From Macrostomum lignano (taxonomy: Eukaryota): a stretch of 41,610 nucleotides of DNA. The stretch is taken from assembly GCA_002269645.1 (NCBI GenBank), contig NIVC01004575.1, positions 1 through 41,610 of the forward strand, written 5' to 3'. Positions 5,342 through 37,422 of this stretch are shown here, one piece after another; the stretch's first letter is position 1, and every line of letters starts with the position of its first letter. The translations under genes were made by a program, and so were the position numbers. Below the pieces are notes generated by a model. The model was not told where the DNA came from. It did no database searches and saw only the letters and a program-made list of their open reading frames with translations.

Positions 5342-5566
5342 ATGGCAACTCAGCCAACAGACGAAATCATTGAATGGCATAAGAGATTGGGTGGTGACAA
5401 CTTTGATTACTGGATTCCACCAACTGTAACGGCCTGTTTTACAGAAGAGAAACTAAAAGCATTGAGTGATATTCATTCTTCAGGAAATTTTAGCAACTTA
5501 TCAGAATGTCTAAAAACAAAGCTTCTTCTTGCATTGTGTAATATGCCACAAAGAAACTCTGATCAG
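5342..5566 (+). CDS. NELFA: NELF-A exon 1 (MATQPTDEIIEWHKRLGGDNFDYWIPPTV...KTKLLLALCNMPQRNSDQ)
   Basis: Resembles NELF-A LWLHNKLG..ELWAPPSI...KLKLLLGTLHLPRR; donor CAG|GTAAGT, phase 0. Confidence 0.9.
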
Positions 5567-8982: not shown

Positions 8983-9012
8983 GTCAGGCTGTGTGCGCGT
9001 GTTCTCACTGCA

Positions 9013-9879
9013 CCCCAGATACATATGGATTACCCCAGATACCTATGGATTACCCCAGATACCTATGGATTACCCCAGATACCTATGGATCACCCCAGAT
9101 ACCTATGGATCACCCCAGATACCTATGGATTACCCCAGATACCTATGGATCACTCCAGATACCTATGGATCACCTCAGATACCTATGGATTACCCCAGAT
9201 ACCTATGGATCACTCCAGATACCTATGGATCACCTCAGATACCTATGGATTACCCCAGATACCTATGGATCACCTCAGATACCTATGGATTACCCCAGAT
9301 ACCTATGGATCACACCAGATACATATGGATCACCCCAGATACATATGGATCACCCCACATACATATGGATCACGCCAGATACATATGGATCACCCCAGAT
9401 ACATATGGATCAACCCAGATACATATGGATCAACCCAGATACATATGGATTACCCCAGATACCTATGGATCACCTCAGATACCCTATGGATCACCCCAGA
9501 TACCCTAAGGATTACCCCAGATACCTATGGACCCCCAGATACTCATGGATCACCCCAGATACCCTATGAATCACCTCAGATACTTTATGAATCAGCCCAG
9601 ATACCCTAAGGATTACCCCAGATACCTATGGACCCCCAGATACTCATGGATCACCCCAGATACCCTATGAATCACCTCAGATACTTTATGAATCAGCCCA
9701 GATACCCTAAGGATTACCCCAGATACCTATGGACCCCCAGATACTCATGGATCACCCCAGATACATATGGATCACCTCAGATACATATGGATCACCCCAG
9801 ATACCTTATGGATCACCTCAGATACCTTATGGATCACCTCAGATACCTTATAAATCACCTTAGATACCTATGGATCACA
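9013..9879. repeat. 20-21 bp minisatellite (ATACCTATGGATTACCCCAG), ~42 copies, in NELF-A intron 2
   Basis: Direct periodicity; source of the YLWITPDTYG ORFs. Confidence 0.95.
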
Positions 9880-9919
9880 TTTTTCACCGTTTTCCTCCCA
9901 ATGCGCCCAAACCGAGCAG

Positions 9920-10218
9920 ATGCGCCGCCCCGTGCAGAGCCAGCCGCCGCTGCAGCTGCTGGCCAGGCAGCGCTCATCCGTTCACCCGCTGGGGACGCCG
10001 GTCGGCGGGTCGCACGGCCTGCATCATCAGCTATCGCAGCAGCCGCCGCAGCAGCGCACCACTAAACTGATTGAGCTGTCCGAGCCGCCCGCCATCGGCC
10101 GCGCCGCTAAGGCCCGTCGGCGTCAGGAAGAAGCGGAGCGCCGTCGACAAGAGGAGCGGGCCGCTAAGGAGGAAGCCGCCGCCAAGGCCGCCCAGGCTCG
10201 CGAAGCTGAGGAGGCCAG
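9920..10218 (+). CDS. NELFA: NELF-A exon 3 (MRRPVQSQ...TKLIELSEPPAIGRAAKARRRQEE...)
   Basis: Resembles NELF-A VKLLDISEL...GREAKRRR; acceptor gagcag, donor AG|GTAAGG, phase 0 in, phase 2 out. Confidence 0.85.
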
Positions 10219-10262
10219 GTAAGGACTCTGGGTAGCGCTTAACTGGCGTTTCAAGCTCATTG

Positions 10263-10670
10263 ATCCTTAGTTGCTGGGCCAGCCTCCCAGATCCCCAGTT
10301 GCTAGGCCAGCCTCCCAGATCCCCAGTTGCTGGGCCAGCCTCCCAGATCCCCAGTTGCTGGGCCAGCCTCCCAGATCCTCAGTTGCTGGGCCAGCCTCCC
10401 AGATCCCCAGTTGCTGGGCCTGCCTCCCAGATCCTCAGTTGCTCGGCCAGCCTCCCAGATCCCCAGTTGCTAGGCCAGCCTCCCAGATCCCCAGTTGCTG
10501 GGCCAGCCTTCCAGATCCTCAGTTGCTGGGCCAGCCTCCCAGATCCCCAGTTGCTGGGCCTGCCTTCCAAATCCTCAGTTGCTGTACCAGCCCCCAGATC
10601 CTCAGTTGCTGTACCAGCCTCCCAGATCTTCAGTTGCTGGGCCTGCCTCCCAGATCCTCAGTTGCTCGGC
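10263..10670. repeat. 28 bp minisatellite (CCCCAGTTGCTGGGCCAGCCTCCCAGAT), ~14 copies, in NELF-A intron 3
   Basis: Direct periodicity; its ORFs repeat every 28 aa (three units). Confidence 0.95.
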
Positions 10671-10735
10671 TGAGATTTCAAGACTGAGGCGAATACTCTG
10701 CAGTTTTTACAAATCCAGTGCTCCAACCATTGCAG

Positions 10736-11207
10736 ACAGCAGGCCCTGGCAAAGGAGGCAGAGGAAACTGCCGCAGCGGCTCAAGCAGCCTCCGCCGCCG
10801 CGGTCGCTGCTGCCTCATCGTCGGTCGTGAATTCCAATGCGGCCGGCTCGATGCCCGCATCTGCGGCTGGCCTGCCGCATCTGTCCTCCCCGTTGCTGAC
10901 GCCGTCCGGACCTGCCGGTGCACCGAATTTTGCCGGCCTGTCAACTGCAACGGTGTCGGTGTCGGCGCCATCCAGCGCGCCGTCGGTTGTTCCAGCGACG
11001 CTGCCTTCCCTGCGCCTGACTCCGGCCAGCACCTCGACGCTGACTCAGCCGACGAATCAGCAGCCTGTGCAGCAGCAGCAGCAGGCGGCGCAGCCTCAAC
11101 CGCCCGGTGCATCGGCGGCAGCGGCAACGCCGAGCTACCTGCTCCCGTTCGCGCCAGCCTATGCCGGCCAGATGCAGCAGCCGACGCTGTTTGCCTACAG
11201 CCAGCCT
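10736..11207 (+). CDS. NELFA: NELF-A exon 4, low-complexity A/S/P/Q linker
   Basis: Acceptor ccattgcag in phase 2 continues the frame of ORF 10827; donor CCT|GTGAGT, phase 0. Confidence 0.8.
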
Positions 11208-11330
11208 GTGAGTTATTCCAGATTGTCTCTTAGTGGGAGTTGGATTATGTGATCCTATGTTGTTGTACCTGTTGCTCGAATGTGCGTCTGCCCGCTGTCA
11301 CACCTTCACTGCTAATCACATTTCACTGTC

Positions 11331-12058
11331 TTTTCTGTCAGCTACCCTATCTACTCTGTCAGCTACCCTACCTACTCTGTCAGCTACCCTACCTACTCTG
11401 TCAGCTACCCTACCTACTCTGTCAGCTACCCTACCTCCTCTGTCAGCTACCCTACCTACTCTGTCAGCTACCCTACCTACTCTGTCAGCTACCCTACCTA
11501 CTCTGTCAGCTACCCTACCTACTCTGTCAGCTACCCTACCTCCTCTGTCAGCTACCCTACCTACTCCGTCAGCTACCCTACCTACTCCGTCAGCTACCCT
11601 ACCTACTCTGTCAGCTACCCTACCTACTCTGTCAGCTACCCTACCTACTCTGTCAGCTACCCTACCTACTCTGTCAGCTACCCTACCTCCTCTGTCAGCT
11701 ACCCTACCTCCTCCGTCAGCTACCCTACCTACTCCGTCAGCTACCCTACCTACTCTGTCAGCTACCCTACCTCCTCTGTCAGCTACCCTACCTACTCTGT
11801 CAGCTACCCTACCTCCTCTGTCAGCTACCCTACCTACTCCGTCAGCTACCCTACCTACTCCGTCAGCTACCCTACCTACTCTGTCAGCTACCCTACCTCC
11901 TCTGTCAGCTACCCTACCTACTCTGTCAGCTACCCTACCTACTCCGTCAGCTACCCTACCTACTCCGTCAGCTACCCTACCTACTCTGTCAGCTACCCTA
12001 CCTCCTCTGTCAGCTACCCTACCTACTCTGTCAGCTACCCTACCTACTCTGTCAGCTA
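11331..12058. repeat. 21 bp minisatellite (CTCTGTCAGCTACCCTACCTA), ~34 copies, in NELF-A intron 4
   Basis: Direct periodicity; source of the LSATLPT and LPYLLCQ ORFs. Confidence 0.97.
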
Positions 12059-12089
12059 TTTCATGGCTGGCACTCCATTAACTTTTCAG

Positions 12090-12620
12090 ACTGCGTCTGC
12101 AGCGCCAAACAACATCACGGTTGTGCAGCTGGTCAATCGACCTTACGCGATGCAGCAGCAGCAGCCGCAGCAACAGCAACAGCAGCAGCAACAGCAGCAG
12201 CTCCAGCACCAGCCGCCGCAGCAACAGCAGCAGCTCCAGCACCAGCCGCCGCACCAAGCGGCCGCCTCCCTGTCTGTCCAGCTGACGCCAGAGCAGAGCC
12301 GAGCTGCCGCCGAGCTATTCGCCACGGCCAACAAGCTCACTAAGCCGGAGAAATCAGTCATATTGGCTTTTATTGGCGGCAATAGGACTAATTTAACCCC
12401 CGAGCTCGGCCACCTGGTTCGAATTCACCTGTCCGAATACAAAGAGCGCGTGTTCGATCAGAATCAGCGAGTCTACAAAGACGTCATTGCGGATCAGTAT
12501 TTTCAAATGGACTACGCCAGCGGACACTGGACTATTGTTAAACGGTACAAGGAGGGCGCACCCGAGGTGCTGGCTAGGCTGGACTATCTTCGGCCTCAGC
12601 AGCAGCAGCAGCAGCAGTAA
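12090..12620 (+). CDS. NELFA: NELF-A exon 5, conserved C-terminal domain (LTPEQSRAAAELFATANKLTKPEKSVILAFIGGNRTN...FQMDYASGHW) ending in poly-Q and TAA
   Basis: Resembles NELF-A LTREQMFAAQEMFKTANKVTRPEKALILGFMAGSREN...FEMNYATGQW; acceptor ttttcag; five exons total 2070 nt = 689 aa plus stop. Confidence 0.92.
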   Translation, partial: TASAAPNNITVVQLVNRPYAMQQQQPQQQQQQQQQQQLQHQPPQQQQQLQHQPPHQAAASLSVQLTPEQSRAAAELFATANKLTKPEKSVILAFIGGNRTNLTPELGHLVRIHLSEYKERVFDQNQRVYKDVIADQYFQMDYASGHWTIVKRYKEGAPEVLARLDYLRPQQQQQQQ

Positions 12621-16464: not shown

Positions 16465-16629
16465 TCAGGCCACAGCCTCCGCCGCATTGGGCCCGGCCTC
16501 ATCGTCGTACTCAACCGACGGGTTGCTCTTTAGAAAATGGGCCAGCTGGTTATTGGATAGGCTGGAGTTCATCGACCGGCGATCCATATCAGAGTCAAGC
16601 CCCATCCTGAAAGCGTTCACAACGCGAAC
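16465..16629 (-). CDS. ATP2B (PMCA): PMCA terminal exon T3, canonical type (VRVVNAFRMGLDSDMDRRSM...SVEYDDEAGPNAAEAVA*)
   Basis: VRVVNAF completes the CaM-binding domain (cf. IRVVNAF); acceptor ccccttttcccctctctctctctag, phase 0; not in the ORF track. Confidence 0.88.
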   Translation of the reverse strand, partial: VRVVNAFRMGLDSDMDRRSMNSSLSNNQLAHFLKSNPSVEYDDEAGPNAAEAVA

Positions 16630-17389
16630 CTAGAGAGAGAGAGGGGAAAAGGGGCTTAAGTTAACGGCCATTTGATTTAAGTTTGCGGTTTGTTAACATT
16701 ACGAGCACAAAGCGAACCTGCGAAAAGCTTTTTTCACAGTTTTTGGCTGGAAAACTCAATAAATAACGACATCAAACGGGTCACGCCGAAACTTATTTAA
16801 AAATTATAAAATAATATTATAATTATAAACATCGCTTAATTAGCAATGTAGTGCAAGCTGGGATCAGCTGGGATCAATTCAGTGCAAGCATGTTTGGTGT
16901 GCGTGTCTGTGTGCTCGCGCGCAGATGAGAATTTTCTAATATATTACTTACTAACGTCTGTGATTTCAGTAGCAAGTGGCAAAAAAGATCCAATTTTAAT
17001 AGAATTGTTTGAAAAAGATGACTCCAGGCCCTGACGACACCAGAATAGGTGAATGAGGAACTGTAGTTTGGTTCTGATTGTCTATTCGTAGCATATTAAC
17101 CTGGACTCCGGGGCAACGATTGATACATTGACTATATGTACCGGCGAAGCAGAGTCGTGCTAAAAATCTGACCTTTAGGAATACCGAACGATAAGAGAGA
17201 TCAACTTTTTAAAATCTGTGATAAATAAAGAGTAGGATAAAGTGCAAGTTTGTTTTCAGTGTGCCTGTGCAGAGCGGGTTACACGGAGAAGCAGCGGCGC
17301 AATTGTTGCTCATTTAATCTTCTAAAAAATTCTAGCAGTCGCACTTTTCACTTTCTATTAGAAGGTCCTGATCGCTTTGGCTATCTTAA

Positions 17390-17712
17390 ATGGGGTAAGG
17401 GAGTGCAGCCAATTAAACTGGGGTAAGCTAGGATGCAGCCAATTAAACTGGAGTAAGGGTACAGCCAATTAAACTGGGGTAAGGAATACAGCCAATTAAA
17501 CTGGGGTAAGGGGTGCAGCCAATTTAACTGGGGTAAGGGATGCAGCCAATTAAACTGGGGTAAGGGGTGCAGCCAGTTAAACTGGGGTAAGGAGTGCAGC
17601 CAATTAAACTGGGGTAAGGGATGCAGCCAATTAAACTGGGGTAAGGGGTGCAGCCAGTTAAACTGGGGTAAGGAGTGCAGCCAATTAAACTGGGGTAAGG
17701 GGTGCAACTAGT
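17390..17712. repeat. 27 bp minisatellite (ACTGGGGTAAGGGGTGCAGCCAATTAA), ~12 copies
   Basis: Direct periodicity. Confidence 0.95.
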
Positions 17713-18411
17713 TAAACTTGATCAATTAGTGACCTTCTTGGATTGGTCGTATGCTGGCTGAATGCCTTGCAGAGTGGATCGCTAGCGCATTGGCATTTTC
17801 AAGTGCAAACAAACACAGCTTAACAAAAGAACAATTTCATGGGAGTCGAAGGTATAAAAAACGGCAAGGTAGGACGACCACGATGGACACAGGCAGGACG
17901 AGACACGTTGACGAGATGTGGGTTGAGACAATTTTTTGGCGTCGCTGGGAGAAAGATAATGAAGCGGACGAGAAGCTGTGCTCGGACTGAGGGCTAAAGC
18001 TCACTTGCCGTCTAACTGTTGAACTGAGCCGAGGTTCGGTTGTTATACGGATGTTCCAGGTCATTTTTTAGCTCCTGCCTTCAGTAACTTTCAGACCGAT
18101 TCTATTAGGAGTTGTTTCGCGCACATCTTAGCCAGTTTGCCTTTACTGTGGCATGTTTTAGATTTTCTAACTTAAGCAGTACCCCTCCACCGACTGAGTT
18201 GGCATGGCTTGGCAAGGACAGCAGTAGTGATGTGAAAGAAACAAATAATTCATGATGATTTGTACGATAGAGAGAAAATTGCCTGCGAAAAGAGACGCTA
18301 ACAAGATAAGAAAACAAAAACTGTTGACGTCGGAGTGGTCTGCGCGACTTTAGAGAGTTAAGGGAGAAAGAAGATAGATGGTGAGAATCATGATGAGAGC
18401 TGCGGTGGAGA

Positions 18412-18815
18412 CAGTGTGAGAGTCAGGGTGGAGTCAGTGTGAGAGTCAGGGTGGAGTCAGGGTAAGAGTCAGGGTGGAGTTAGTGTGGAGTCAGTGTGAG
18501 AGTCAGGGTGGAGTTAGTGTGGAGTCAGTGTGAGAGTCAGGGTGGAGTTAGTGTGGAGTCAGTGTGAGAGTCAGGGTGAGAGTCAGGGTGGAGTCAGGGT
18601 GAGAGTCAGGGTGAGAGTCAGGGTGAGAGTCAGGGTGGAGTCAGGATGAACCAGGAAGGAGTCAGGGTGGAGTCAGGGCGAGAGCAGAGTGGAGTCAGTT
18701 TGGAGTCAGTGTGTCAGTGTAAGAGTCAGGGAGAAGTCAGGGTGAACCAGGGAGAAGTCAGGGTAAACCAGGGAGGAGTCAGGGTGAGAGTCAGAGTGAG
18801 TCAGGGTGGAGTCAA
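18412..18815. repeat. ~11 bp degenerate minisatellite (GAGTCAGGGTG)
   Basis: Direct periodicity, decaying at the right end. Confidence 0.9.
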
Positions 18816-18858
18816 GATAATAGTGGTGATGCCTACAATGCTGAGAGTCAGGACGCGG

Positions 18859-19323
18859 TCAAACAGCGGGCGGGTCCTCCTCAACGATGGAGGCGCCGCC
18901 GGCGCTGGCTCCCGCGCCGAGCTGCAGGTGGCCGGAGCCGCCTAGCGGGCCAACCCAGTCGATGGAGTGGCTCTTGCCGCCAACTTGTGCGTGCGCGCGA
19001 AACACCCCCCCACTGGCAGCCCCGGCAACGACGGCACTGGCGGAGCTGCCACCAGCCACTGCGGTCACCCTGCCGACTCCGTCTAAGCCGCCGACGCTGG
19101 AATCGGGCAGCGCGGAGGCGGAGTCGGCGTCCTCGGCAGGGTGACCGGCGCCGCCGCTGCCGCAGGCGACGGCATCGTCAGCGGAGGCAAAGCGGGTCAT
19201 GGGCCTGGGGTGGGTGTTCGACCGGCGGTAGAGCAGCATCTGGCGCTGCCGGCGCAGCTCAATGAAATCCTTGCGATCCTCCAAGTCCTCCAGGGTGCTT
19301 TTGAAGGCGCGGACGACGCGCAG
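18859..19323 (-). CDS. ATP2B (PMCA): PMCA alternative terminal exon T2 (LRVVRAFKSTLEDLEDRKDF...EEDPPAV*), 154 aa
   Basis: LRVVRAF is a second copy of the CaM-domain second half, directly after acceptor aaatccacgcag in phase 0; GC3-rich codons. Confidence 0.82.
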   Translation of the reverse strand: MRVVRAFKSTLEDLEDRKDFIELRRQRQMLLYRRSNTHPRPMTRFASADDAVACGSGGAGHPAEDADSASALPDSSVGGLDGVGRVTAVAGGSSASAVVAGAASGGVFRAHAQVGGKSHSIDWVGPLGGSGHLQLGAGASAGGASIVEEDPPAV

Positions 19324-20670
19324 CTGCGTGGATTTTGATGCGGTTCGGAGATCGAGGGGGAAACGTGTTGGCTTGGCCGGTTGGGAGGTGGAGGTTGGCA
19401 CTGGACGCAATTGGGGATTCCCTAGTTACGGAAACTCTGAGGCTGGCGGAGCGGGCTGCCGCAGGTGAGCCGCGCAACTCGCTGGCATCCGACTCGAGGT
19501 CGTGCTTGACTACCGCTGCGCCTTTCCCTCCCTCTCCCTCTCCCCTCAGCCTCTCAGCCTCTCCCTGTCCCCGTCTATCTCTCAGCCTCACTCTAGACTC
19601 TAGCTCTCCCCTTCTTTTTTTCTCTATAAATCCTTTCCCTCTGTATCCGCCTCTATTGTTCTCGTCGCGTCACGCAGGATTTCTGCGCGCTACGCAGGCC
19701 TCTGCGGAGCTGAACCGCGAACTCGCAAGGGCATGGGGGCAAACGGGAGGGCAAAAAGAAGGTCAAACAAAAAGGTGAACAAAAAAGTGCCTGAAAACTC
19801 AAGTGACAGAATGTGTACGAGCATCGCTACTGCCCCCATCTCAATTTAGTAGTAAGAAGCGGGTGCGCGTGTTATCATACGAGTACTATAGAATATAAAA
19901 TCAATGTAGCTAGCTCGTAAAATAAGTTCCGTGTCAACTAAAAATGACTTGTGTTCCACTTAAAGAGCTGTGAAGAAGACTTAAAAAAGTTTAGCAAGTT
20001 AAGCTTGAAATAATATAGCAAAGCACTCGTAGCATTCTAACTTGGCTACTAAATTGGGGGAAAAGATAGCTAAGCAACTTTAAAGCAAAATTCCTATAAC
20101 GGTAGGAAACTTATAGTTATGGTGACTTTTTTTAGAAAATACATGCATAATTCCATTAATCCAACACCATGCTTACACCAACAGCTAAAGGTAATTAGCT
20201 AGCTGATCGTGGAGCAAGGATGCTTACTATATGTACAGTACTAATAAAGATTTAGCAAAGGAATAGTTATCGTCATCGATGCCACTAACTGAAGATAAAG
20301 CAAATTATCGAAAATATCAGAATCATGCAATCAAATGTTAGAACCGAAAGATAAATGAGAATGCTATTGTTACTACTCAGTAATAAGAATATGCGTAGTA
20401 TTTGTTGCAAAATAAACTGAGTTGGAATTTGGAAGCAACAAACAAAATATGCACAAACTGCTACACAATGGCTAATGATATCCGTGTTTCAGTTAAGAAT
20501 CTACCTCGTAGATAAGAGGAACTTATTAGTAACAAGCTTGCCAAAAGAAAAATGCAATCTACTAAACAGGTTTCGAACGGCTAAAATGAAAGAAAGTAGT
20601 GTATACTGCAGTGTGCAGATCCAACACCGACATGTGTCTGAAGTTGGCTGGAGCTGTTCTAGCTACTTAC

Positions 20671-20679
20671 CGTTTGCAT
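20671..20679 (-). CDS. ATP2B (PMCA): Candidate 9-nt PMCA microexon (MQT) at splice site C
   Basis: ~35-nt pyrimidine tract ending tcttgcag, then ATGCAAACG, then GTAAGT; phase 0-0. Confidence 0.65.
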
Positions 20680-22247
20680 CTGCAAGAATAAAAAGGGAGG
20701 GAAGGAGAGAGTGGAGCGGGAGGTACGGTAGGCAATAACGGAGCCATTGGGGAGAATTATACTATTCATTTAAGGGAACACATATTGGAAAAATAAATCC
20801 GGAAAAGTAAAATTAAACTTGAACTATAGTAAGCCGGCTAAACTATATTTAAGCGAATTTTATTTAGCTTACTTTTAATTACCTTTCTAAGTTGAAAGTA
20901 TGACAAAATAATAGATCTTACTTTCCATAGTATAAATGAGAGTAAAAAAATAATACCGATAGAAAAGAATCATATTAATTCAGATAAATTTTTCGAATCG
21001 AAAAAAATATATAGATGGGGTTGATTATATGTAGAAATAAATTTAACTGTAGTCTAAATATAGTTATTTACAAAAATATTTTGTTCGCGATTATAAACCG
21101 GATATGAATTTAATCGTTTACAAAAATATTGTTGCCAATATTAGCAGACCAATCGATAACTATTCAAATAATGGCCAACGTGTTTCAGAAAATTTATTTT
21201 AAAAGCACTCTGCATCTCTACATTCATTATTCTAAACCTAAATGGTGCTTTTTTTCCAGTAAAACAACAAAAATGTCAATTAAATGTTTTAATTTATACG
21301 CTTTCATTGCCGCCACAAATTCACGTCTGCTATATTTAGCTGGTAGAACGAAAAAGAAACGATATTTTCAAACACGAATAGTTTGTTAAATTAAAATTTT
21401 GCGTGCGTTTGTTTTTAGCGCTCGATAGTAAAACGCGCAAAAATCGATAGAAACACGCGTAGAATTTCGCTATTTGACAGTTTCTAATGATCGTTAATTA
21501 TTAAAATACAATAATGTAGTTCGTATAGAGATGCCAGTATATGCGTAAACAAAATAACGTACTGTAGATATAAAGTAGTGCTTTGGACAGTAATAGTAGT
21601 TCAAGATGAAGCGAGACGAGATGACAGCGTTGCTTGTTTTACAATAAGGATAAAAAAAATTTTTATCTTTAAAAAAGATTTTCGATAAACTTTACACCGA
21701 AAATCAAAAGTTACGGTGCAGATTTTTTAAGTAGCTCCAACGCCTTTCTTTGTTCCATTAGTTCTTTTTTATGTTAGAACTACGAGCGTATATAGACACT
21801 ACAAGCAATGGTAAAATTTCAGTAAATATTGAAACCACAAATAGAAGGAAGCAGCCTATATAGCTAATCAAGCGACAACACCGTATATAGTCGAGGTGGC
21901 AGGCTTGGGTTAAACTAAAGCGGTTGAGCGTGTATTTTTAGTATTTATGTTCTGTCAGGATGGGAGAGTAAAACACGACTTGAATTAGAGACTATAACAG
22001 AACTAAGGATATAATCGATATAAATATGACACAGTATAAATAATGATAAACAAGCAATGGGCGTAATATACGAGCTAGTAGTGATGCTAACTGTACGTAT
22101 TTGATAAACAAAGCATGCTAAAATTGTTTATTGATTTTGTTAGTTTGAACAAAACATGATTAACTATATAAGCTACACACGTCGCTATAAGCTTTTAGGT
22201 AGCCGCTGGGCCGAACTCGATGAGTTTTAAGAGTTGTTTCTTGACTC

Positions 22248-22481
22248 TCAGTTATCTTTCTTTTGTAGCTCCTCTTCTTCCGACTCATTTAATGGCTGCT
22301 GATCTTGCTTTTCCTGCTGCTGCTGCTGTCCGCGGCTGCTCAGCAGCCTGTCGCTGCTATTGGAACTCGGAGGCCCAGCCGCCTGCCCGACTCCAACTAT
22401 GGTCATTCGGCGCTCTTCGATCTTGCGCAGAGCCGACACCATCCAGGGATCGATTGAGCGCAACTCGTCTGCCCGTCGGCG
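22248..22481 (-). CDS. ATP2B (PMCA): PMCA alternative terminal exon T1 (RRRADELRSIDPWMVSALRKIEERR...LQKKDN*), 77 aa
   Basis: Acceptor ctgtacag in phase 0; coding-like GC-rich island in AT-rich intron; AATAAA (- strand) at 22132-22127; no homology support. Confidence 0.6.
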   Translation of the reverse strand, partial: RRRADELRSIDPWMVSALRKIEERRMTIVGVGQAAGPPSSNSSDRLLSSRGQQQQQEKQDQQPLNESEEEELQKKDN

Positions 22482-22924
22482 CTGTACAGTTGTTGTTGTT
22501 GACAAATGAAAGGTGAGGGAAATTGTAAAGGGGTTTGCGGATTGGGCGCGTCTTATTAGCACATGTATTGAGTCGGGTTGGCCGCTACTAAACCTCAATC
22601 GAATGAATAAGCCGATGAGTTTTCACTTAATCCGCTAGCGCTCTTAGGGCATCCAAGCGCTCTGGAAGAAGACCCCTTCCCGTGAACTTACGAGAAAATG
22701 ACAATTAAGCCTGATCAGATCAGTGCATACAAACAATTGGGGCTGTTAAAGAGAGACCTTTTAACAATTGGATAGGAATCATTTTAAGTGTTAGTAACTG
22801 CGATTTAGTGTGTCAAAAACAGCACTCAAGGTGTAAAAAACAATGACGCCTCGATCGGGTGTTAGGAATGGCACTGCAGGTACCAACGATGGCATTTTTG
22901 TGTCTACCCTTCTTCTGTCAGGAA

Positions 22925-23695
22925 GAATAAAGCTGTTTGAGCGTTGACACTTAATTGAGATGTCAAGAAGAATACCTGTTTGAGTGCTGACACTTAATTG
23001 AGATGTCAGGAAGAATACCTGTTTAAGCGTTGACACTTAATTGAGATGTCAGGAAGAATACCTGTTTGAGTGTTGACACTTAATTGAGATGTCAGGAAGA
23101 ATACCTGTTTGAGTGTTGACACTTAATTGAGATGTCAAGAAGAATACCTGTTTAAGCGTTGACAATCGAGATGTCAGGAAGAATACCTGTTTGAGTGTTG
23201 ACACTTAATTGAGATGTCAGGAAGAATACCTGTTTGAGTGTTGAAACTTAATTGAGATGTCAGGAAGAATACCTGTTTAAGCGTTGACAATCGAGATGTC
23301 AGGAAGAATACCTGTTTGAGTGTTGACACTTAATTGAGATGTCAGGAAGAATACCTGTTTAAGCGTTGACAATCGAGATGTCAGGAAGAATACCTGTTTG
23401 AGTGTTGACACTTAATTGAGATGTCAGGAAGAATACCTGTTTGAGTGTTGACACTTAATTGAGATGTCAGGAAGAATACCTGTTTAAGCGTTGACAATCG
23501 AGATGTCAGGAAGAATACCTGTTTGAGTGTTGACACTTCATTGAGATGTCAGGAAGAATACCTGTTTAAGCGTTGACAATTGAGATGTCAGGAAGAATAC
23601 CTGTTTGAGTGTTGACACTTAATTGAGATGTCAGGAAGAATACCTGTTTAAGCGTTGACAATTGAGATATCAGGAAGAATACCTGTCTGAGCGTT
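22925..23695. repeat. 43/39 bp minisatellite (GAGTGTTGACACTTAATTGAGATGTCAGGAAGAATACCTGTTT plus a 39-bp variant), ~18 units
   Basis: Direct periodicity with two interspersed unit types. Confidence 0.95.
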
Positions 23696-25927
23696 GAAAA
23701 TTTGCAATCTATACCTAGTCAAATGACAAAATTTCAAGTATCAGTACGCTGGTAACAGCCCCGGTGTCAAGAATGGCGCTGTAGGTGTCAGGAACACCAC
23801 TTTAAGGATTCAGTGAGGTTAGAGAGGTTGGTTCCCAATAGTGAGTTTGCTAGGCTAGCAGATAAGATCACTCATCGGAGAATGCATCCGATTTCGGCTT
23901 AAAAAATTGGCTCGAAAAACCGAATAAAAAATGTCATATGCAGGAAAATGACGTATTGCTATAAGATACATGTGGTAATTTTGTAAGTGCGCTATTTAAA
24001 ACCCGCATGCCACATGACTGAGGTATTTTTAATAACTACGTAGTAGCAGTAGAAGAATGGAATTTTATTAAAAAAACCGGCCTTCTAATTTTTATTGGCC
24101 AGAGATTTATAACATGTCTTAGTGTTGCGTGTTGAGCGATCCATCCTTCTACTTGAAGTTCTGTATACTCAAACCCATAACAATATATATTGGTAGTAGT
24201 ATTGGTTTTAACTTATTATATATATAAACTTACAGTGGTTACATATGGTAGCGATATAGATGGCATAAATATATTACTATATAAATATCGTATTGACAGC
24301 ACATTTTCTTGTGATCTTTTAGATATCTATATTTTAGATATTTATGTATAAGTTTGAATACGATTGTTTTGTTATACTGGTCTATCAACCATGCAGTTTT
24401 ATTAGGAAATGTTTAATAAAGAAACAATTTTCTACTTGTATTTTGCTTCGATTAAGATAAATGTGATATTTATCATTGAGTATAGTTAGATTACAAACTA
24501 CGTAACAATATTCCAGGTTAATATGAGCATGACGAAGCAAAACGTGTGCAATGGTTTCAGATGAAATCAAATCAATTTGTCACTATATAATAGCAGATTG
24601 CTAAACATATTTGTTAGTTTAATGAAAAGTTGAGCTATCTATTTAGCATTATTTAAATTATAAAGTGCAAATTGCAAAGAATCTGATTACTTTTAATTAT
24701 AAGTCTAAGTTTTGCGAAATAAGGTGCTACGGTGAGTAACGATTTGCAGTTAACAGAAAAAGTAAAAACAGGGAACGACTGGTTTATATAATACGGGCAA
24801 CTCGATGGGATTACTAAACTCGGACGGCACGGCGCGGTTTAAGAAATGTTTTTTAAACACTTTTGTTAATTTTACATCGCTTCGTTTCTGAATATTTTTA
24901 TTAATTATAATAAACTATAGCTAATCACCTAACAACTTTTAATGTAGCTATCGATAATGGAAACGCAAAACTTAAATTTGCTACGTCAAAGCGAAGCTAA
25001 AATAATACGCTTGTTATGTAATCATTTTTAAAAGCGAACATTAAATTGCTGGCAGTTTTTTAGCATGCGGTAGTTGATTATTCGGATATGCGAGTATTAA
25101 TCGTGGTACAACAGTAAATATGATGGATAGTATATATAAGAATATTTTTTAATAATAGTATTCAATATTCACAATTATATTTGTTACGCCCCCCACTTTT
25201 CATTTTAAAAAATTCGATTGACAAATATTCAGCTGTGATTTTAATCTACATGTATCTACTACAACCTTAAGACTTTTACTCATTCGTTACTTTTATTTAC
25301 ATTTATAACGATATAACTGCATATATATAACTCTATAACTTATTTAAACTGTGACTATATTTATCACTAAACATTGTATTGTCCAGATGAAATCCAAATC
25401 CGTTAAATCATATTTAACGAACGCGGATTTAGCTTTCAATTGTGGATTATAAGACGCCATGATATACATGTTCTATGTAGTTATTGATTTTAATGACTAT
25501 TGTTTAATTGATATACATGTGCATAATACATTCAAAGCTTACTTAATTAAACACGAAAGGCCGTAGGGGAGGCACAGACTTGTGAGGGTGGACTTGGGGG
25601 CAAGAAAGATTATTATATGGGTCCTTGGGCTGTGTGTACAAAGCCAATGTACAAAGGCTTGGTGAGTGGGGTGGGCAGAGAATAAACTTGTTTTGGACGC
25701 ATACAGAATTATATATGTACGGCTCTGGGTGGTTTTGGGTTAGGGGTAGGGCCTGTATGTACAATTGACACTATAGTAGCTATAATAGCTCGTACCTCCA
25801 AAGTCTAAACTCCAGTACTCCAGCCCCAATTTTCATAGTAAAAAATGCAGCTAAAGCAAATGAATTAACTAGAGCAAGTTGATGTTATTTTTAAAAAGAA
25901 TAAGTAAAAAATACAGAATTTGCTTAC

Positions 25928-25942
25928 GTTTTGTTTGATTAA
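25928..25942 (-). CDS. ATP2B (PMCA): Candidate 15-nt PMCA microexon (LIKQN) at splice site C
   Basis: ctctgcctctccgtag|TTAATCAAACAAAAC|GTAAGC; phase 0-0, no stop. Confidence 0.55.
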
Positions 25943-26784
25943 CTACGGAGAGGCAGAGTCTGACTTGTAACACCGGAGAATATTGACGGCCGCTTGTTGA
26001 CTTCTTCATGCTCAGTTATCACTTTTGTCGGATTCCAAATTTAGTATCCGCGCGGGAATAATTTTACCCATATTGGAGTGTAGATCGAGACATACGTGTA
26101 CACATGTACAAAATGTACAAGCTGGCGGTCAAAAGCCAGATATCAGGTTCTTTACATTCGGGGACTGGTGCAGGGGTTTGTGATGTTCAGGCTCAAGCTT
26201 TTGAAAGTGCAATTAATAGATGGAAATAATTAACTCAGCAGCAACAGGCGATTGATCTCTCGTTGTCAACTTGGGGCAACAGTACAAAACAAACATTATT
26301 ATATTGGAATAATCTTTCGAGTAATTTTGTGTGGCTGCATAGTTTTGGAAGATTCGATAACTCGTCTTCTGTTGGTACAAATAAAGAGATATCATGCGTT
26401 GCTGAGTATATTATTAGCCATATTTCTAAACTGCAAACCTCACTTTGAAAAGCTTTTTACATGTATGTAATATTAGCAATTTACTCCAGGTAATTGTATG
26501 TGTATAAGGTAAATCCGGACCCTCATTGCATAAGAAGAAAGAATTGACAACAGTGACGTACAACAATGGAGTCTTAACAGTAACAATAAGCATTAGCACG
26601 GATGCTTTGACTGCAAGCAGCACAGAGACAGACAAAAGCAACATAGTCAATTGGCTAGTTATAGCTAGCAAAGTCGCACCCAATCGTCTCTAGTGGCATT
26701 GATTATCTTACGGGTATGCCCAACTTAATATTTTGTCTTAACTGATGAAAATGAAATCCGCAAAAGGCGAAAAAAATCTGCAAA

Positions 26785-26857
26785 TTTTTCATGTTAAATT
26801 GGTCTGTCACTTGAAAAAACGTTTAAAATAATGACAAGACCAATTTAACATGAAAAA
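26785..26857. repeat. Near-perfect 25/26-bp inverted repeat with a 22-nt spacer
   Basis: TTTTTCATGTTAAATTGGTC-TGTCA versus TGACAAGACCAATTTAACATGAAAAA. Confidence 0.85.
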
Positions 26858-27018
26858 TCGATTAATGCGTCGTTAGAGCAGCATGTGAGGCACAAAATAG
26901 TGTGATTAGAACTTTCTCTGACACTGTTAAGAGACCCAATCACTGTTTTAGTGTTGAAAATCGTAAAATTTCCTATCTCCGTAGTGTCTTTTTCCGGTGA
27001 AACCTGCCTTTAAAACTA

Positions 27019-27409
27019 TTTCTAAACGAAAAGCTTTATGAATATCGATAGAGCAATAAGAAAGGCACAACATATCAAAAGATGAACTCTGGATCTGCCT
27101 CCCATCAAAAGCAATAACAATTTATGTGCTGAAAAAATTAAAACCTCCTATCTCTGTAGTGTATTTTTTCGGCGAAAAGTTGCCTTCAAAATATTTACCA
27201 TAGATTTCGAGTGTAGCGTCCTATATATATGTTTACTTGAGTAGTCCTTGAGGTTTTACTGTAAAAGTATACTACAGAGATAGAATAAATTCCTTTTTCA
27301 GCACATAAAGTGCTATTGCTATTGATAGGAGGCAGACCCAGTGTTCATATTTCGATGCCTTGCCTTCCTCATAGCTCTATTAATACTCACAAAGCATCTC
27401 GTTTAGAAA
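27019..27409. repeat. Long imperfect inverted repeat (fold-back), arms 27019-27164 and 27267-27409
   Basis: The reverse complement of the right arm aligns along its length to the left arm (CTAAACGA, TCTGCCTCC, TTTATGTGCTGAAAAA, CTATCTCTGTAGT); roughly three-quarters identical by eye. Confidence 0.8.
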
Positions 27410-28904
27410 ATTAGGATTATGCTTAATTATCGACTCATTGGTTTTAGAAATCTATTTTGTTACTCTGTTACACATTTGCATGTAACAGAATCCTAAATTT
27501 TGTGACATTAGTTTCCCGTCCATCTACTTGAGTAGTCCTTGAGTCCCGACTGCGATTGTTGCAGATGGTCACACAGATAAATCAAAGCCACTAGGGCTCA
27601 CTGGGCTTGACTGCCATTTTGTTGTGGTTTAGCACAGATCTAGGCGTTATAAGCTGAGCATAGCAAATAATACGGTTAGTGATTGAAAGCACTTTATTAA
27701 ATACAAACTCAAATACAGACAAGTTCATCGTTTTAATTTCAATATTACCAAAATTACCAAAATTGATATAGAAAAATAATCAATCTATCTCCAACAGACA
27801 TTATTAATTTAAATTACTATTGTTTTTTTAAAATAACACTCACTTTACAATCAAGGTGGAAAATAAAGCAAAGTAAAAATAATGCTTAACTAAGCGCATA
27901 TTAAATTGGCACACAGATCGGCAATAACAAAAATCAAGATTGGCACGGGTCCAGCAAATTAAAAAAATAATCGATTAGCGAATCAAAGTAAGAAAAGATG
28001 GTTAACAAATTGCATTGCAGCAGCGGCGGCTATAAGCTTCTCATTAAAGTAGTTTGTAATATTTATTCTATTACGTAATCTAATTACGTAACCTTGATAA
28101 AGAATAAAAGTTTTGTTTAAATGCACCAGTTAAGTTTTGTAAAAAATGCGGATTAGGTCATTTTTCCGATCGTGCAAACACAGGTTGTTGTCTTTCACCA
28201 GGAAAATGACACCGCATAATTATTAATGATGATATAAATTTTATAAAACGTTTAACGTGATTTGAACTGAAATTTAATTTCGAACAGAAATCCAATTTTC
28301 CGTATAATTCACATACTTTTTGACAGACTAAAAGAAGCTCCAAAGAGAAGAATGCTTTCATTCCTACTGAGCAGTAGTAGTGTATGGCGCATTGTGCAAG
28401 CAAAAATGAAATTAGATATTGATCGATAGAATGGACCCATTCTGTAACCGCCACCCCCGTCCCGAACCCTCCAATCCCCAGCGAACGACCCCCGCGGACA
28501 CAAATTAGATTTTTTAACAACCTTAGCTTCGCGGAAAAGCTTGGCTAAAGTCGCCATGCCAGCGACGCTAAATCGCCTGACGGCCGCCAATTGGGCCGGG
28601 GACAGCGGCTGCAAATTGGAGCGAGAATTGCGGATTGCAACGGTCTCAGGCGTCTCCTTCTCTCTCAGCTTACTCCACATTCCGGTGTAAGGCATGATGG
28701 GACCAGAAAGAATGTGTGTGGATGGGAGCAACATTTCTGCGCTCTTCCACGTCGACACAAATTGGATATGAATTTTTCATTTACAATTATTTGTACTCTC
28801 TTTCTCATTTCTTCTCTTTTCTCTCGTTTCCTATCGCGCTCTGCTCCATTCATTCCCCTTTAACTCTCTTCTCTCCTCTATTCATTTTCCTTTAACCCTC
28901 TACT

Positions 28905-29205
28905 CTCCTCACCTTCATTTCCCTCAACCTCTCCTCTCCTTCATTCCCCTCAACCTCTCCTCTCCTTCATTCCCCTCAACCTCTCCTCTCCTTCATTACC
29001 CTCAACCTCTCTTCTCCTTCATTCCCCTCAACCTCTCTTCGCCTTTATTCCCCTCAACCTCTCTTCTCCTTCATTCCCCTCAACCTCTCTTCTCCTTCAT
29101 TCCCCTCAACCTCTCTTCTCCTTCATTCCCCTCAACCTCTCTTCTCCTTCATTCCCCTCAACCTCTCTTCTCCTTCATTCCCCTCAACCTCTCTTCTCCC
29201 TATTC
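28905..29205. repeat. 26 bp pyrimidine-rich minisatellite (TTCATTCCCCTCAACCTCTCTTCTCC), ~11 copies
   Basis: Direct periodicity. Confidence 0.93.
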
Positions 29206-29502
29206 TCCCCAACCCATCTAACAATAGCAAGATCAGTGTAGTGAGCAATGCAGAATACAGAACGGCACATAAAGCGCTTATACAAGCCACTGCTCAGTAA
29301 GGACGAACAAGGGACTAAATATAGCTATATGAAGATTGCCAAACTCTGGATCCTTCTCTGAATCGAATGATTTTCTCGTTATTCTGGGAACACGTTGGCC
29401 ATCAATAGTTTTATTACTCGTTTAGATAAAAATTCAATTCAATGACAAAAATTATCAAAGAGGTACATAGAGACACAGAACAGTGACAGAACAGCATCTT
29501 AC

Positions 29503-29694
29503 CTGCGTCTGCAGCCGAGCCAAGCCTCGGATCCACAACACCTGTCCCTTCTTGTTAATATCCGATTCAACATCCGTGAGCGAGGCCATCTGGTCGTACT
29601 GCTCCTCCTCGAGGATCTGTTCGATCTCCTGTTCCGTGCTGCCGCCAATCTCCAGGCACGAAGGCAGGACAGAGATTGGCACTGTGATCACCAA
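29503..29694 (-). CDS. ATP2B (PMCA): PMCA exon: end of TM10 through the first half of the CaM-binding domain (LVITVP...KKGQVLWIRGLARLQTQ)
   Basis: Matches RRGQILWFRGLNRIQTQ; acceptor gccgcag, donor CAG|GTAAGA; 64 codons, phase 0-0 (splice site C). Confidence 0.93.
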
Positions 29695-29783
29695 CTGCGG
29701 CAATGGCGCGTTTGGGATGAATAGAAATCATTGTTTCATTTGTGCAACTTTCTATAGATCTCTATAAATACTTTAGCGGCAAA

Positions 29784-30425
29784 CCCCATCCAAGTAACTT
29801 GTGTCAGCTGACAGAACCCCATCCAGGTAACTTGTGTCAGCTGACAGAATCCCATCCAGGTAACTTGTGTCAGCTGACAGAACCCCATCCAGGTAACTTG
29901 TGTCAGCTGACAGAACCCCATCCAAGTAACTTGTGTCAGCTGACAGAACCCCATCCAGGTAACTTGTGTCAGCTGACAGAATCCCATCCAGGTAACTTGT
30001 GTCAGCTGACAGAATCCCATCCAGGTAACTTGTGTCAGCTGACAGAATCCCATCCAGGTAACTTGTGTCAGCTGACAGAATCCCATCCAGGTAACTTGTG
30101 TCAGCTGACAGAACCCCATCCAGGTAACTTGTGTCAGCTGACAGAATCCCATCCAGGTAACTTGTGTCAGCTGACAGAATCCCATCCAGGTAACTTGTGT
30201 CAGCTGACAGAACCCCATCCAGGTAACTTGTGTCAGCTGACAGAACCCCATCCAGGTAACTTGTGTCAGCTGACAGAACCCCATCCAGGTAACTTGTGTC
30301 AGCTGACAGAACCCCATCCAGGTAACTTGTGTCAGCTGACAGAACCCCATCCAGGTAACTTGTGTCAGCTGACAGAATCCCATCCAGGTAACTTGTGTCA
30401 GCTGACAGAATCCCATCCAGGTAAC
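29784..30425. repeat. 33 bp minisatellite (CCCATCCAGGTAACTTGTGTCAGCTGACAGAAY), ~19 copies
   Basis: Direct periodicity; palindrome TGTCAGCTGACA in each unit. Confidence 0.97.
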
Positions 30426-30458
30426 TAAGAATCGAAAAAAGTTTGCATTCTCTCTCAC

Positions 30459-33258: not shown

Positions 33259-33722
33259 CTTTGAAGCCTGCCACCTTACTAAACAAACAAAGTCACTTCC
33301 TTTGAAGTCTGCCGACTTACTAAACAAACAAAGTCACTTCCTTTGAAGTCTGCCGACTTACTAAAAAAACACGCTTATTCCCTTTGAAGTCTGCCGTCTT
33401 ACTAAACAAACAAAGTCCCTTCCTTTGAAGTCTGCCGACTTACTAAACAAACACGCTTATTCCCTTTGAAGTCTGCCGACTTACTAAACAAACAAAGTCA
33501 CTTCCTTTGAAGTCTGCCGACTTACTAAACAAACACGCTTATTCCCTTTGAAGTCTGCCGACTTACTAAACAAACAAAGTCACTTCCTTTGAAGTCTGCC
33601 GACTTACTAAACAAACACGCTCACTCCCCTTGAAGTCTGTCGTCTTACTAAACAAACACGCTCACTCCCTTTGAAGTCTGCCGTCTTACTAAACAAACAC
33701 GCTCACTCCCTTTGAAGTCTGC
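33259..33722. repeat. 41 bp minisatellite (CTTTGAAGTCTGCCGACTTACTAAACAAACAAAGTCACTTC), ~11 copies, two unit variants
   Basis: Direct periodicity. Confidence 0.95.
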
Positions 33723-34915: not shown

Positions 34916-35118
34916 CTGCGGTAGAATTATGATTAACGAGTTCGAGTTAATTCAGGCAATCATTGTTGCTTTGATTCGATGAGTCCCAGGTTCGATTCTT
35001 ATTTTGGAAGCAAAATATTGTTTTTTCATGTGGTAAAAACTTAAGGAGAGTTGAAGTGTGGAATTTTAGCTCGTAGTAGTATTTGACGTTTTCAATGTGA
35101 TTCTGAAAAGAGGACACG

Positions 35119-35440
35119 GGATTTCGGACAGGGATTTCGGTCAGGGGATTTCGGACAGGGGATTTCGGACAGGGGATTTCGGACAGGGGATTTCGGACAG
35201 GGGATTTCGGACAGGGGATTTCGGACAGGGGATTCGGACAAGGGATTTCGGACAGGGGATTTCGGACAGGGGATTTCGGACAGGGGATTTCGGACAGGGG
35301 ATTTCGGACAGGGGATTCGGACAAGGGATTTCGGACAGGGGATTTCGGACAGGGGATTTCGGACAGAGGATTTCGGATGGGGATTTCGGACGGGGATTTC
35401 GAACAGGGGATTTTGGACAGCGGATTTCGGACAAGGGATT
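35119..35440. repeat. 13-14 bp minisatellite (GGGGATTTCGGACA), ~23 copies
   Basis: Direct periodicity. Confidence 0.95.
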
Positions 35441-35524
35441 CTCAAGGGTTCAAGAGATTAAGGCGAGGGGATTTTAGGGAGTGAATTTGTTGTTGGCTTT
35501 GTCGAGTGAATTTCAGCCACTCAC

Positions 35525-36058
35525 CTCCCAGGTACACCTGAACGGCAGTCATCCTGTTAGTAGTCAAAGTGCCAGTCTTGTCTGAACAGATTGCTGTAGC
35601 ATTGCCCATGGTCTCGCAGGCGTCCAGATGCCGCACCAAGTTGTTGTCCTTCATCATCTTCTTGACTGAGTAAGCCAGAGAGAGGGTGACAGCCAGCGGC
35701 AAGCCTTCGGGCACGGCGACCACGATCACGGTGACGGAGATGATGACGAAGTCGATAAACTTCTGCAGGTCGCGGGTGAAGTTAAACTCCAGGCCGGCTC
35801 CGGTTGGCGGCTGGGCGAAGGTCAGCACGCAGTACTTGATGATGAGGACAAGGAAGGTCACAGCGCCGATCAGCGAGCCGACGTTGCCTATCCGGATGGC
35901 CAAGCTGGTGAGCTTGGCCTGCAGGATGCTCTTCTCCTTGCTTGACGAGTACTTTTTCTTCTTCTCTTCGTCGTCCACGTGATTGGTGGCGCCGTCGCCC
36001 CCGGCTGGCGAGGAACCGGCGGCGCCGCTCACAGCAGTCAGCTGTACAGCTTCGGGAT
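35525..36058 (-). CDS. ATP2B (PMCA): PMCA exon, TM3-4 and phosphorylation site ([10 protein letters not shown]...[13 protein letters not shown]...[13 protein letters not shown])
   Basis: PEGL and DKTGT P-type ATPase motifs; acceptor cacggcag (phase 1), donor G|GTGAGT (phase 1). Confidence 0.97.
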
Positions 36059-36087
36059 CTGCCGTGGGCAGGGATTGGCGAGTTGTA

Positions 36088-36225
36088 AGCACCTGGGACA
36101 GGTAATTGTGTCAGCACCTGGGACAGGTAACTGTGTCAGCACCTGGGACAGGTAACTGTGTCAGCACCTGGGACAGGTAACTGTGTCAGCACCTGGGACA
36201 GGTAACTGTGTCAGCACCTGGGACA
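36088..36225. repeat. 25 bp minisatellite (GCACCTGGGACAGGTAACTGTGTCA), ~5.5 copies, just upstream of the PMCA acceptor
   Basis: Direct periodicity. Confidence 0.93.
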
Positions 36226-37422
36226 GATTGCTTTATAAATAAACCGATAAGCAAACACTTCAAGCATATATTCGAAGGCACAGTTTGCTAGGAAATGGCG
36301 GAACAAAACTATACCAGAGCTCGTGCAAAAAGCATTAAAATTTTCAGAAGATCACTCAGTACACTTCAAATCGATATAGTGTTGAAAATTTCTCTGTGTC
36401 CGCTGCTAATTCACGTCTAGAAATCATTTAAATAGAATTGTAAATAATACACAGCAGGAATAACAAGCTACTTTAAGTAGCTTTACTGCTGTTTTAGTCG
36501 GAGAAAACACAAAGATGTTTCACGCTTCAACAATATAAATTATTCTAGTTGGAGATTTAGCCGCGCCTCAGTCAGACCTGAGCTGAGAACTAATATTGAG
36601 CACAGGGAAGGGGGGGGTGAGCTGCATGCGTTCGAGGCGTTAGTTGAAGAGCAGACAAACTTATGCTTGGGTCCGGGAGGGGGGAAAATTCCCGTGTGGG
36701 GATATTTTTAGCCAGCGGATCGGTAATTAATTCGGCATCAGAATTAAGGGATAACAAAAACTGCATGCTGGGGGGGGGGTGTTCAGCCTGAGACGCCGGA
36801 AAAAAGATTCAGAAGAGAGAGAGGGGAACGGAGGAGGCAGAGCCAACGAAGAAGGTGTGCGTGCAGTCGGTAGAAAATTAATCCCTCGACTCATTCCAGG
36901 GCAACCAGGCTTTGCTGCCGCATGGGCTGGCAGGTTGCGATGGGGGGAGGGGGAGAATTCGCATGGGATTTCTAGCCCACTGCCTGGCCAAATAGGCCAT
37001 GAGGAAAATGTTCGGCCAGCAAGGCTTGAGCTTGTTCCGTTTTCCCATCCCGTCAGGGCCATTCTCGACGCATAATATTGCGCCAAAATCATTATTTCCC
37101 TTTCATTTGGCTACTCAACTCAGCTGCCAATGCCGGGGGTGGGGCGACAGAGCAGACAAAGCTGTCGAGAATAGGATTAAATCCCCGCTGCTGCCTTGCC
37201 CCATCCTAAATCCCCGAGCACACTCGAATGAATCAGCTGCTGCTAGTTGGGCCAAAATCTTCTCAAGTAATTTGCCTTGATTTGACTTTGGCAGGAATCT
37301 GGGCCTCCGCTTGGCTGTGCTGCATCTATTGCCTATGGGTACCTCATTTATTGCCCACAGGCCAATAAGCTGCTTCTGAAACCAATTCTGCGCATTGCGG
37401 ATTGATGTTGGAATTGTTATTT

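Follow-up and report, generated by a model that had tools for sequence, protein, structure and literature searches.

The 3' part of a gene for a plasma-membrane Ca2+-ATPase of the P2B type (PMCA) occupies the minus strand of the window, by which we mean the whole stretch of 41,610 nucleotides (nt) from Macrostomum lignano (contig NIVC01004575.1) that was analysed. Six elements, all likewise on the minus strand, encode or may encode the calmodulin-binding tail of this pump: an anchor exon, three actual or candidate last exons (here denoted T1, T2 and T3) and two actual or candidate microexons, named after their peptides MQT and LIKQN. We favour, with a probability of roughly 0.72, the reading in which T2 and T3 are paralogous alternative tails at PMCA splice site C and MQT is a conserved microexon, T1 and LIKQN being candidates only. 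According to this reading the pre-mRNA would pick among at least two alternative last exons after the exon ending ...WIRGLARLQTQ, and T2 or T3 would complete the calmodulin-binding and autoinhibitory helix, with V14 and F18 counted from Trp1, and then add a differing C-terminal tail. MQT could be inserted before a VVxAF exon, which would put three more residues between Trp1 and the second helix half. Such a choice would be the invertebrate version of splicing at PMCA 'site C', derived from the bilaterian ancestor, in the gene of a protostome-type animal. The junctions described here were read from genomic sequence alone, and we infer the actual isoform usage in this organism.

Judged by homology the gene is a PMCA. 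An upstream open reading frame (ORF) at 35442..36092 encodes CSDKTGTLT, the P-type ATPase phosphorylation hallmark (motif DKTGTLT). The exons for transmembrane segments (TM) 7 to 10 are 58-87% identical to PMCA homologues in tblastn, with fragments from many animals, and a protein search returned 903 PMCA-type matches at E<=1e-20. The anchor exon (29503..29694) encodes the end of TM10, an acidic linker and the first half of the calmodulin-binding domain; it reads ...DINKKGQVLWIRGLARLQTQ at its C-terminal side, the calmodulin-binding half being GQVLWIRGLARLQTQ, and covers positions 1-15 of the Pfam profile PF12424 (ATP_Ca_trans_C). It ends with ...WIRGLARLQTQ in phase 0 at the donor CAG/gtaaga (slashes mark splice borders). 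The ...R[LI]QTQ junction within the calmodulin-binding domain is identical in every homologue retrieved, and lies directly after Q11, 11 residues past the Trp anchor (W1). Calmodulin grips this domain through the hydrophobic anchors W1, V14 and F18, and site C falls inside it (PMC12693652). With the junction after Q11, the V14 and F18 anchors are therefore encoded by the alternative exons. An earlier account of this DNA made without database searches, the sequence-only reading, had already proposed the PMCA identity and the position of the junction at site C inside the calmodulin-binding domain, and tblastn, PF12424 and the 11-residue distance from Trp bear out both. Translation likewise confirmed its six elements, with phase 0 at every tail junction and AG/GT borders; both microexon lengths are multiples of 3.

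T2 (18859..19323; coding 19323..18862, stop 18861..18859) is an alternative last exon of 154 amino acids (aa) plus stop, and T3 (16465..16629; coding 16629..16468, stop 16467..16465), the most distal last exon, holds 54 aa plus stop. The T2 acceptor reads ...atccacgcag/CTGCGCGTCGTC and the peptide starts LRVVRAFKSTLEDLEDRKDF (also given as LRVVRAFKSTLEDLED...); that of T3 reads ctctctctctag/GTTCGCGTTGTG, opening the peptide VRVVNAFRMGLDSD...AEAVA before its stop. Exactly two xxVVxAF copies are present in the window, T2 and T3, and each carries the motif of a tail class: 'LRV[IV]RAFKSTLEDLEE' for T2, which supplies the V14 and F18 anchors, and '[ILV][RK]VVNAFR.GLD' for T3. Joined to the anchor exon, both extend the PF12424 match (gathering cut-off 22.9 bits), T3 to 54.1 bits (profile positions 1-37) and T2 to 46.5 bits (positions 1-29); anchor, MQT and T3 together score 44.2 bits.

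Comparison with tails from other animals separates the two copies. T2 scores 77 against the bee T2-type exon, to which it is 50% identical across 50 aa, and 38 against the nematode T2-type, and T3 scores 49 against the tapeworm T3-type and 36 against the bee T3-type; across classes the scores are near 20, and outside the common xxVVxAF the likeness is class-specific. A T2-type tail, LRV[IV]RAFKSTLED[LM]EE..., follows the junction in many arthropod-like transcripts, one spider and one nematode, and transcript-derived proteins carrying it after ...RLQTQ include P0014, P0016, P0021, P0028, P0043 and others. The T3-type tail, [IL][RK]VVNAFR.G[LV]D..., is found in tapeworm, fluke, insects, nematode and Logan/JGI transcripts, and stands after ...RLQTQ in P0001, P0002, P0011, P0017, P0024, P0078 and P0098. 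By these matches T2 and T3 are real and ancient paralogues, orthologous to known tail classes, and it is very likely that both are used. T1, T2 and T3 each end in their own in-frame stop, and no donor of at least 7/9 was found inside or after T1 or T2 (best 6/9), which is consistent with terminal exons. The earlier view of T2 and T3 as paralogous tails with their own stops and no usable donor downstream thus stands, on homology and on the class scores.

A simpler account would have T3 alone in use, MQT being included or skipped as in tapeworms, with T2 a decaying relic of the ancestral duplicate and T1 and LIKQN a chance ORF and chance AG-GT configurations. The contig of the tapeworm Dibothriocephalus latus fits this account, since it has MQT and a T3-type exon and no T2-type exon was found on it; the acceptor of T3 (ccccttttcccctctctctctctag) is by far the best of all, and the latter two-thirds of T2 are Ala/Gly-rich and of low complexity. 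However, the 154-codon frame of T2 is still open, its GC content at third codon positions (GC3) is 0.81 compared with 0.82 in the constitutive exons, and its codon score is frame-specific (+0.86 versus 0.15 and 0.0 in the other two frames). The likeness of T2 to the bee exon and an acceptor equal in quality to that of the constitutive anchor exon also argue against decay, as a relic is unlikely to retain such features, and we regard the T3-only account as improbable. All sequence beyond the junction motif differs between T2 and T3, a parallel to the vertebrate a and b variants; use of both last exons, as preferred above, would give distinct downstream regulatory tails.

The MQT microexon (20671..20679, 9 nt) encodes three residues between the halves of the calmodulin-binding domain. 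Its splice context is ccctttttattcttgcag/ATGCAAACG/gtaagtag, with ttattcttgcag on the acceptor side, an acceptor pyrimidine fraction of 0.88 and a donor of 8/9. We screened 29502..16630 for stop-free AG-(3n)-GT segments, requiring YAG, a donor of 8/9 or better and a polypyrimidine fraction of 0.75 or more. MQT was the only segment in these 13 kb to pass, compared with an average of 0.015 candidates in local shuffles. D. latus has a counterpart, tttttccttctcaag/ATGCAAACT/gtaagtg, at L004 1972-1980, in the corresponding intron, which is bounded by the ...WIRGLNRLQTQ exon (L004 602-793) and a T3-type exon from 8792; the chance of finding AG-ATGCARACN-GT in an 8-kb intron is estimated at about 2e-4. 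Furthermore, a protein of Hymenolepis microstoma (P0012, 'expressed protein' in the source) reads ...GQILWLRGLNRLQTQ-MQT-LKVVNAFRMGLD..., that is, RLQTQ-MQT-LKVVNAF. The D. latus gene model P0002 omits MQT. Screen and counterparts together indicate that MQT is a conserved microexon; it is probably alternatively spliced, and we consider its use likely. The searchable literature yielded no description of a microexon at PMCA site C, so that MQT is apparently undescribed, a modestly interesting detail and the best-supported new element of the locus. If used, it would offer a natural experiment on anchor spacing versus calmodulin affinity.

The MQT sequence ATGCAAACG and the LQT codons at the anchor exon end (CTGCAGACG, 29506-29514) are equal in 7/9 bases, and inclusion of MQT makes the near-repeat LQTQ-MQT; the resemblance may reflect a local duplication of the anchor exon end as the origin of MQT.

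T1 (22248..22481; coding 22481..22251, stop 22250..22248) is a candidate last exon of 77 aa plus stop that is not homologous to T2 or T3. Its acceptor reads ...aactgtacag/CGCCGACGG... and its peptide RRRADELRSIDPWMV...LQKKDN before the stop, starting with RRRADELRSIDPWMVSALRKIEERRM. T1 coincides with a GC island of about 230 nt (0.58-0.62 versus 0.28-0.48 in the flanks), whose edges lie near the in-phase AG and the stop codon of T1. GC at its first, second and third codon positions is 0.66, 0.42 and 0.65, a three-base periodicity with low GC at the second position that is coding-like, and its AG is the first beyond a pyrimidine-rich stretch. An AATAAA hexamer at 22127..22132 (minus strand), 115 nt past the T1 stop, is a possible poly(A) signal for an mRNA ending in T1. 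LIKQN (25928..25942, 15 nt), an unverified candidate microexon, has the context ctctgcctctccgtag/TTAATCAAACAAAAC/gtaagc, with an acceptor ending ccgtag, an acceptor pyrimidine fraction of 0.71 and a donor of 7/9.

The junction peptides that could follow GQVLWIRGLARLQTQ include VRVVNAF..., LRVVRAF..., MQT-VRVVNAF... and RRRADELRSIDPW..., and they differ in the placement of the calmodulin anchors. T2 (L12 R13 V14 V15 R16 A17 F18) and T3 (V12 R13 V14 V15 N16 A17 F18) both retain V14 and F18. With MQT before T2 or T3, Thr would stand at position 14, Val at 17-18 and Phe at 21, placing the second half of the helix about one turn farther from W1, and LIKQN before T2 or T3 would bring Phe to position 23, a spacing increased by 5 residues. 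The T1 junction (R12 R13 R14 A15 D16 E17 L18 ... P23) lacks both V14 and F18, and its use would swap out the second half of the calmodulin-binding domain; if used, T1, like MQT, would presumably weaken or modify calmodulin binding and autoinhibition. From this geometry one could propose a graded calmodulin tuning at a single junction, through MQT, T1 and LIKQN in addition to T2 and T3, with at least six tails, in which T1 would drop the second half of the helix and bring a Trp-containing basic helix, DPWMVSALRKIEERRM; we consider this proposal improbable.

Several points weigh against the reading that we prefer or against its candidate elements. Three protein searches for Macrostomum PMCA proteins or isoforms gave only fragments of <500 aa, none above 61% identity, and no transcript or annotated protein of the organism or of a close relative was found, so that no junction is demonstrated directly. 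The first canonical poly(A) hexamer lies 1540 nt downstream of the T2 stop and 2045 nt downstream of the T3 stop, which leaves the nearest 1.5 kb and 2 kb, respectively, without one; hexamers proved informative for T1 alone. That MQT alters calmodulin affinity or autoinhibition is something we only infer from its sequence. The immediate polypyrimidine score of T1 is weak (0.41), no T1 homologue was found at E<=1e-3 among 1.84 billion representative proteins, and the codon-usage log-likelihood was rejected as evidence for its coding, being driven by GC and equally high in antisense. Joined to the anchor exon, T1 leaves the PF12424 match at positions 1-15 (26.9 bits). When the microexon screen was run with relaxed cut-offs, MQT and LIKQN alone passed, and the shuffles averaged 0.785 candidates per 13 kb, so that LIKQN by itself is within chance expectation. 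Neither L004, L005, L006 and L002 nor any retrieved protein holds a LIKQN counterpart.

These data bear on the model of the sequence-only reading, in which T1, T2 and T3 combine freely with LIKQN and MQT into up to 10 tails, a number that is an arithmetic upper bound and no observation. Consistent with such a model are the phase 0 and AG/GT borders shared by all elements, the GC island, periodicity, downstream AATAAA and missing donor of T1, and the fact that MQT and LIKQN are the sole segments of the minus strand to pass the relaxed screen, none passing on the other strand. Third tails of a non-VVxAF kind also occur elsewhere, in a similarly placed tapeworm exon (P0030) and in chelicerates (P0058, P0112). 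On the other side, T1 has neither a protein match nor any similarity to the tapeworm third tail, LIKQN is within chance and lacks a conserved counterpart, no transcript was found for any combination, and the single MQT-bearing protein joins MQT to a T3-type exon only. Free combination of all five elements is unlikely, at about the level of the graded tuning proposed above. Of the two microexons in that model MQT is conserved and LIKQN is an unverified candidate, and of its three last exons homologues were found for T2 and T3 and none for T1.

T1 could also be foreign to the PMCA gene, either as the exon of another gene, nested or antisense, or as a GC-rich mobile-element relic in the intron. 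An antisense ORF of 98 aa (22220..22516) is open with an equal codon-bias score, PMCA-type homology is lacking, and a 43-nt minisatellite (22916-23697) lies 435 nt upstream in transcript order. But no homologue of any sort was found, transposon proteins included, and the GC island starts near an in-phase AG and stops near the stop codon; we consider a foreign origin very improbable. T1 is best described as an unverified candidate that may be a third, lineage-specific last exon, with its use somewhat less probable than its disuse, and LIKQN may be a second microexon, whose use appears unlikely.

Splicing at PMCA site C is the classic setting of the calmodulin sensitivity and resting activity of the main Ca-extrusion pump, and tandem exon duplication in the PMCA family has been published. 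Martinez-Gomez et al. 2022 count the PMCA family among those showing tandem duplicated exon substitution, with annotated cases in vertebrates, in arthropods (PMCA) and in nematodes (mca-3); in the supplementary tables the ATP2B1-4 events are dated to Bilateria, and fly PMCA is assigned to the same bilaterian-ancestor event (PMC9741552). The exons of the PMCA events are unnamed in that paper, and we take them to be the site-C pair (PMC9741552). Beyond it, our search of the literature on invertebrate site-C splicing and PMCA microexons found nothing specific. The idea of an undescribed regulatory design, put forward in the sequence-only reading, is therefore not supported, given the published bilaterian duplication (PMC9741552) and the bee and tapeworm loci that share the layout, and its interpretation as a whole is partly supported. 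The locus is for the most part an ordinary case of a known splicing hotspot and adds no new regulatory principle; it shows the invertebrate switch as competing last exons, common to protostome phyla.

In vertebrate ATP2B1-4, site C has the same position, directly after ...RGLNRIQTQ and 11 residues past the Trp anchor, two tandem xxVVxAF exons (MDVVNAF... and IRVVNAF...) are seen in P0039, P0026 and P0088, and the 'a' and 'b' tails diverge in the second half of the calmodulin-binding domain and at the C-terminus. Strehler and Zacharias reportedly described in 2001 that the upstream vertebrate copy is a cassette with internal donors, spliced to a common last exon, and that the 'a' tail is frame-shifted. 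In contrast, the copies in the window each have their own in-frame stop and no good donor, and would act as alternative last exons; a further difference is that no 9-nt microexon at vertebrate site C is described in searchable papers. By analogy with the bee and tapeworm loci, separate last exons, as opposed to the vertebrate cassette and frame shift, appear to be a general protostome feature.

The arthropod and nematode genes (Drosophila PMCA, C. elegans mca-3 and the bee locus L002) match both tail classes, LRVIRAFKSTLEDLEE... and IRVVNAFRQGLD.... At the locus of Melipona, a stingless bee (L002), the T2-type exon closes with a stop of its own after ...LVHETSI, 9 kb before a 23-aa cassette (19194-19262; VIGGELQERLIPVPYSKSSTDQA, preceded by ag and followed by gtaagc), and 6 kb further on lies a T3-type exon with its stop after ...SHTETAV. 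The order T2-type then T3-type is that of the window. The arthropod genes differ in having the 23-aa cassette, VIGG[DE]LQERLIPVPYSK..TDQA (P0049 and the bee locus), between the exons where the window has MQT. Their two tails finish in class I PDZ-type motifs (HETSI, TETAV), whereas the window tails, ending in DPPAV and AEAVA, have none. No counterpart of T1 or LIKQN is present in the arthropod and nematode genes.

The tapeworm likeness comprises a near-identical MQT (ATGCAAAC[G/T], then gtaagt) in the corresponding intron, a very similar T3-type tail (LKVVNAFRMGLDSR...) and a TM9-10 region that is 72% identical. Overall identity to the tapeworm protein is about 50-55%, and it is thus not a close relative. 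The TM9-10 region and MQT of Macrostomum are most tapeworm-like, and T2 is most like arthropods and nematodes. In another tapeworm, Rodentolepis nana (L006), the anchor is followed by a pair of xxVVxAF exons, each with a good acceptor and a stop of its own. In the gene model P0030, a prediction, a non-VVxAF tail exon (L006 4680-4925) stands between the anchor and this pair. A resemblance between T1 and this non-VVxAF tail was considered and rejected, as BLASTP gave no match and the Smith-Waterman score was below the shuffle mean, leaving a positional analogy only. The two xxVVxAF exons of this Rodentolepis paralogue, at 8880 and 10083, fall into no clear T2 or T3 class; by eye the upstream one is T3-like and the downstream one T2-like, which would reverse the order of bee and window and equal the vertebrate a-then-b order.

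The chelicerate-like proteins P0058 and P0112 share a third tail, QTQ/VCLIQLHN.T...QQAQQL.LKR.S.GSPTSPT..., which indicates that lineage-specific truncating tails occur, and T1 therefore stays plausible. This tail starts with Val (GTN), as expected for read-through of the site-C donor, and would truncate the calmodulin-binding domain. In the window, an unused site-C donor lets the frame continue for 15 codons (VRCCSVTVLCLYVPL, then a stop; 29455-29502), so an intron-retention transcript would yield a pump cut off in the middle of the calmodulin-binding domain. Other lineages have different in-frame cassettes at the junction, such as the 24-aa cassette EALVEEISQAIDLDRRRSTMCPAD ahead of MRVVNAF in P0094. 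In the spider Trichonephila clavata (L003 10001-10414) the anchor ...GQILWIRGLTRLQTQ is contiguous with a T2-type tail, LRVVRAFKSTLEDMEE...HETSI and stop, with no site-C intron; tail switching is thus impossible at that junction in this copy, which may be a retrocopy or a paralogue that has lost the intron. Locus structures such as these are of use for PMCA annotation, as automated models often fuse or drop exons (bee P0003 and P0004, and several tails with intron read-through).

Further searches added little. A query with the full concatenated tails was dominated by Ala/Gly/Gln low complexity and gave one match only, metagenome scans with the anchor-exon peptide and with the degenerate GL.R.QTQMQT DNA pattern gave no match, and the Rfam scan of the window was likewise empty.

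A second gene (5342-12620, plus strand) is convergent with the PMCA gene. Its ORFs score 22.5 and 20.8 bits against the Pfam NELF-A N-terminal profile, below the gathering cut-off of 27, and the C-terminal ORF (12063-12620) is NELF-A-like by eye, with no significant Pfam match. Between its ORFs lie in-frame-looking minisatellites: a 20-nt unit repeated 43 times (9011-9878), a 28-nt unit (10262-10670) and a 21-nt unit repeated 34 times (11334-12058). Many PMCA introns also contain long minisatellite arrays, built of 11-30 copies of units that are 14-84 nt long and as much as 98% identical; these are located at 29782-30426, 39858-40814, 22916-23697 and 33259-33722, and further ones at 37422-38545, 17386-17718, 28896-29214 and 35112-35440. 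The exons have a GC3 of 0.82 and the introns are AT-rich, with about 30-40% GC.

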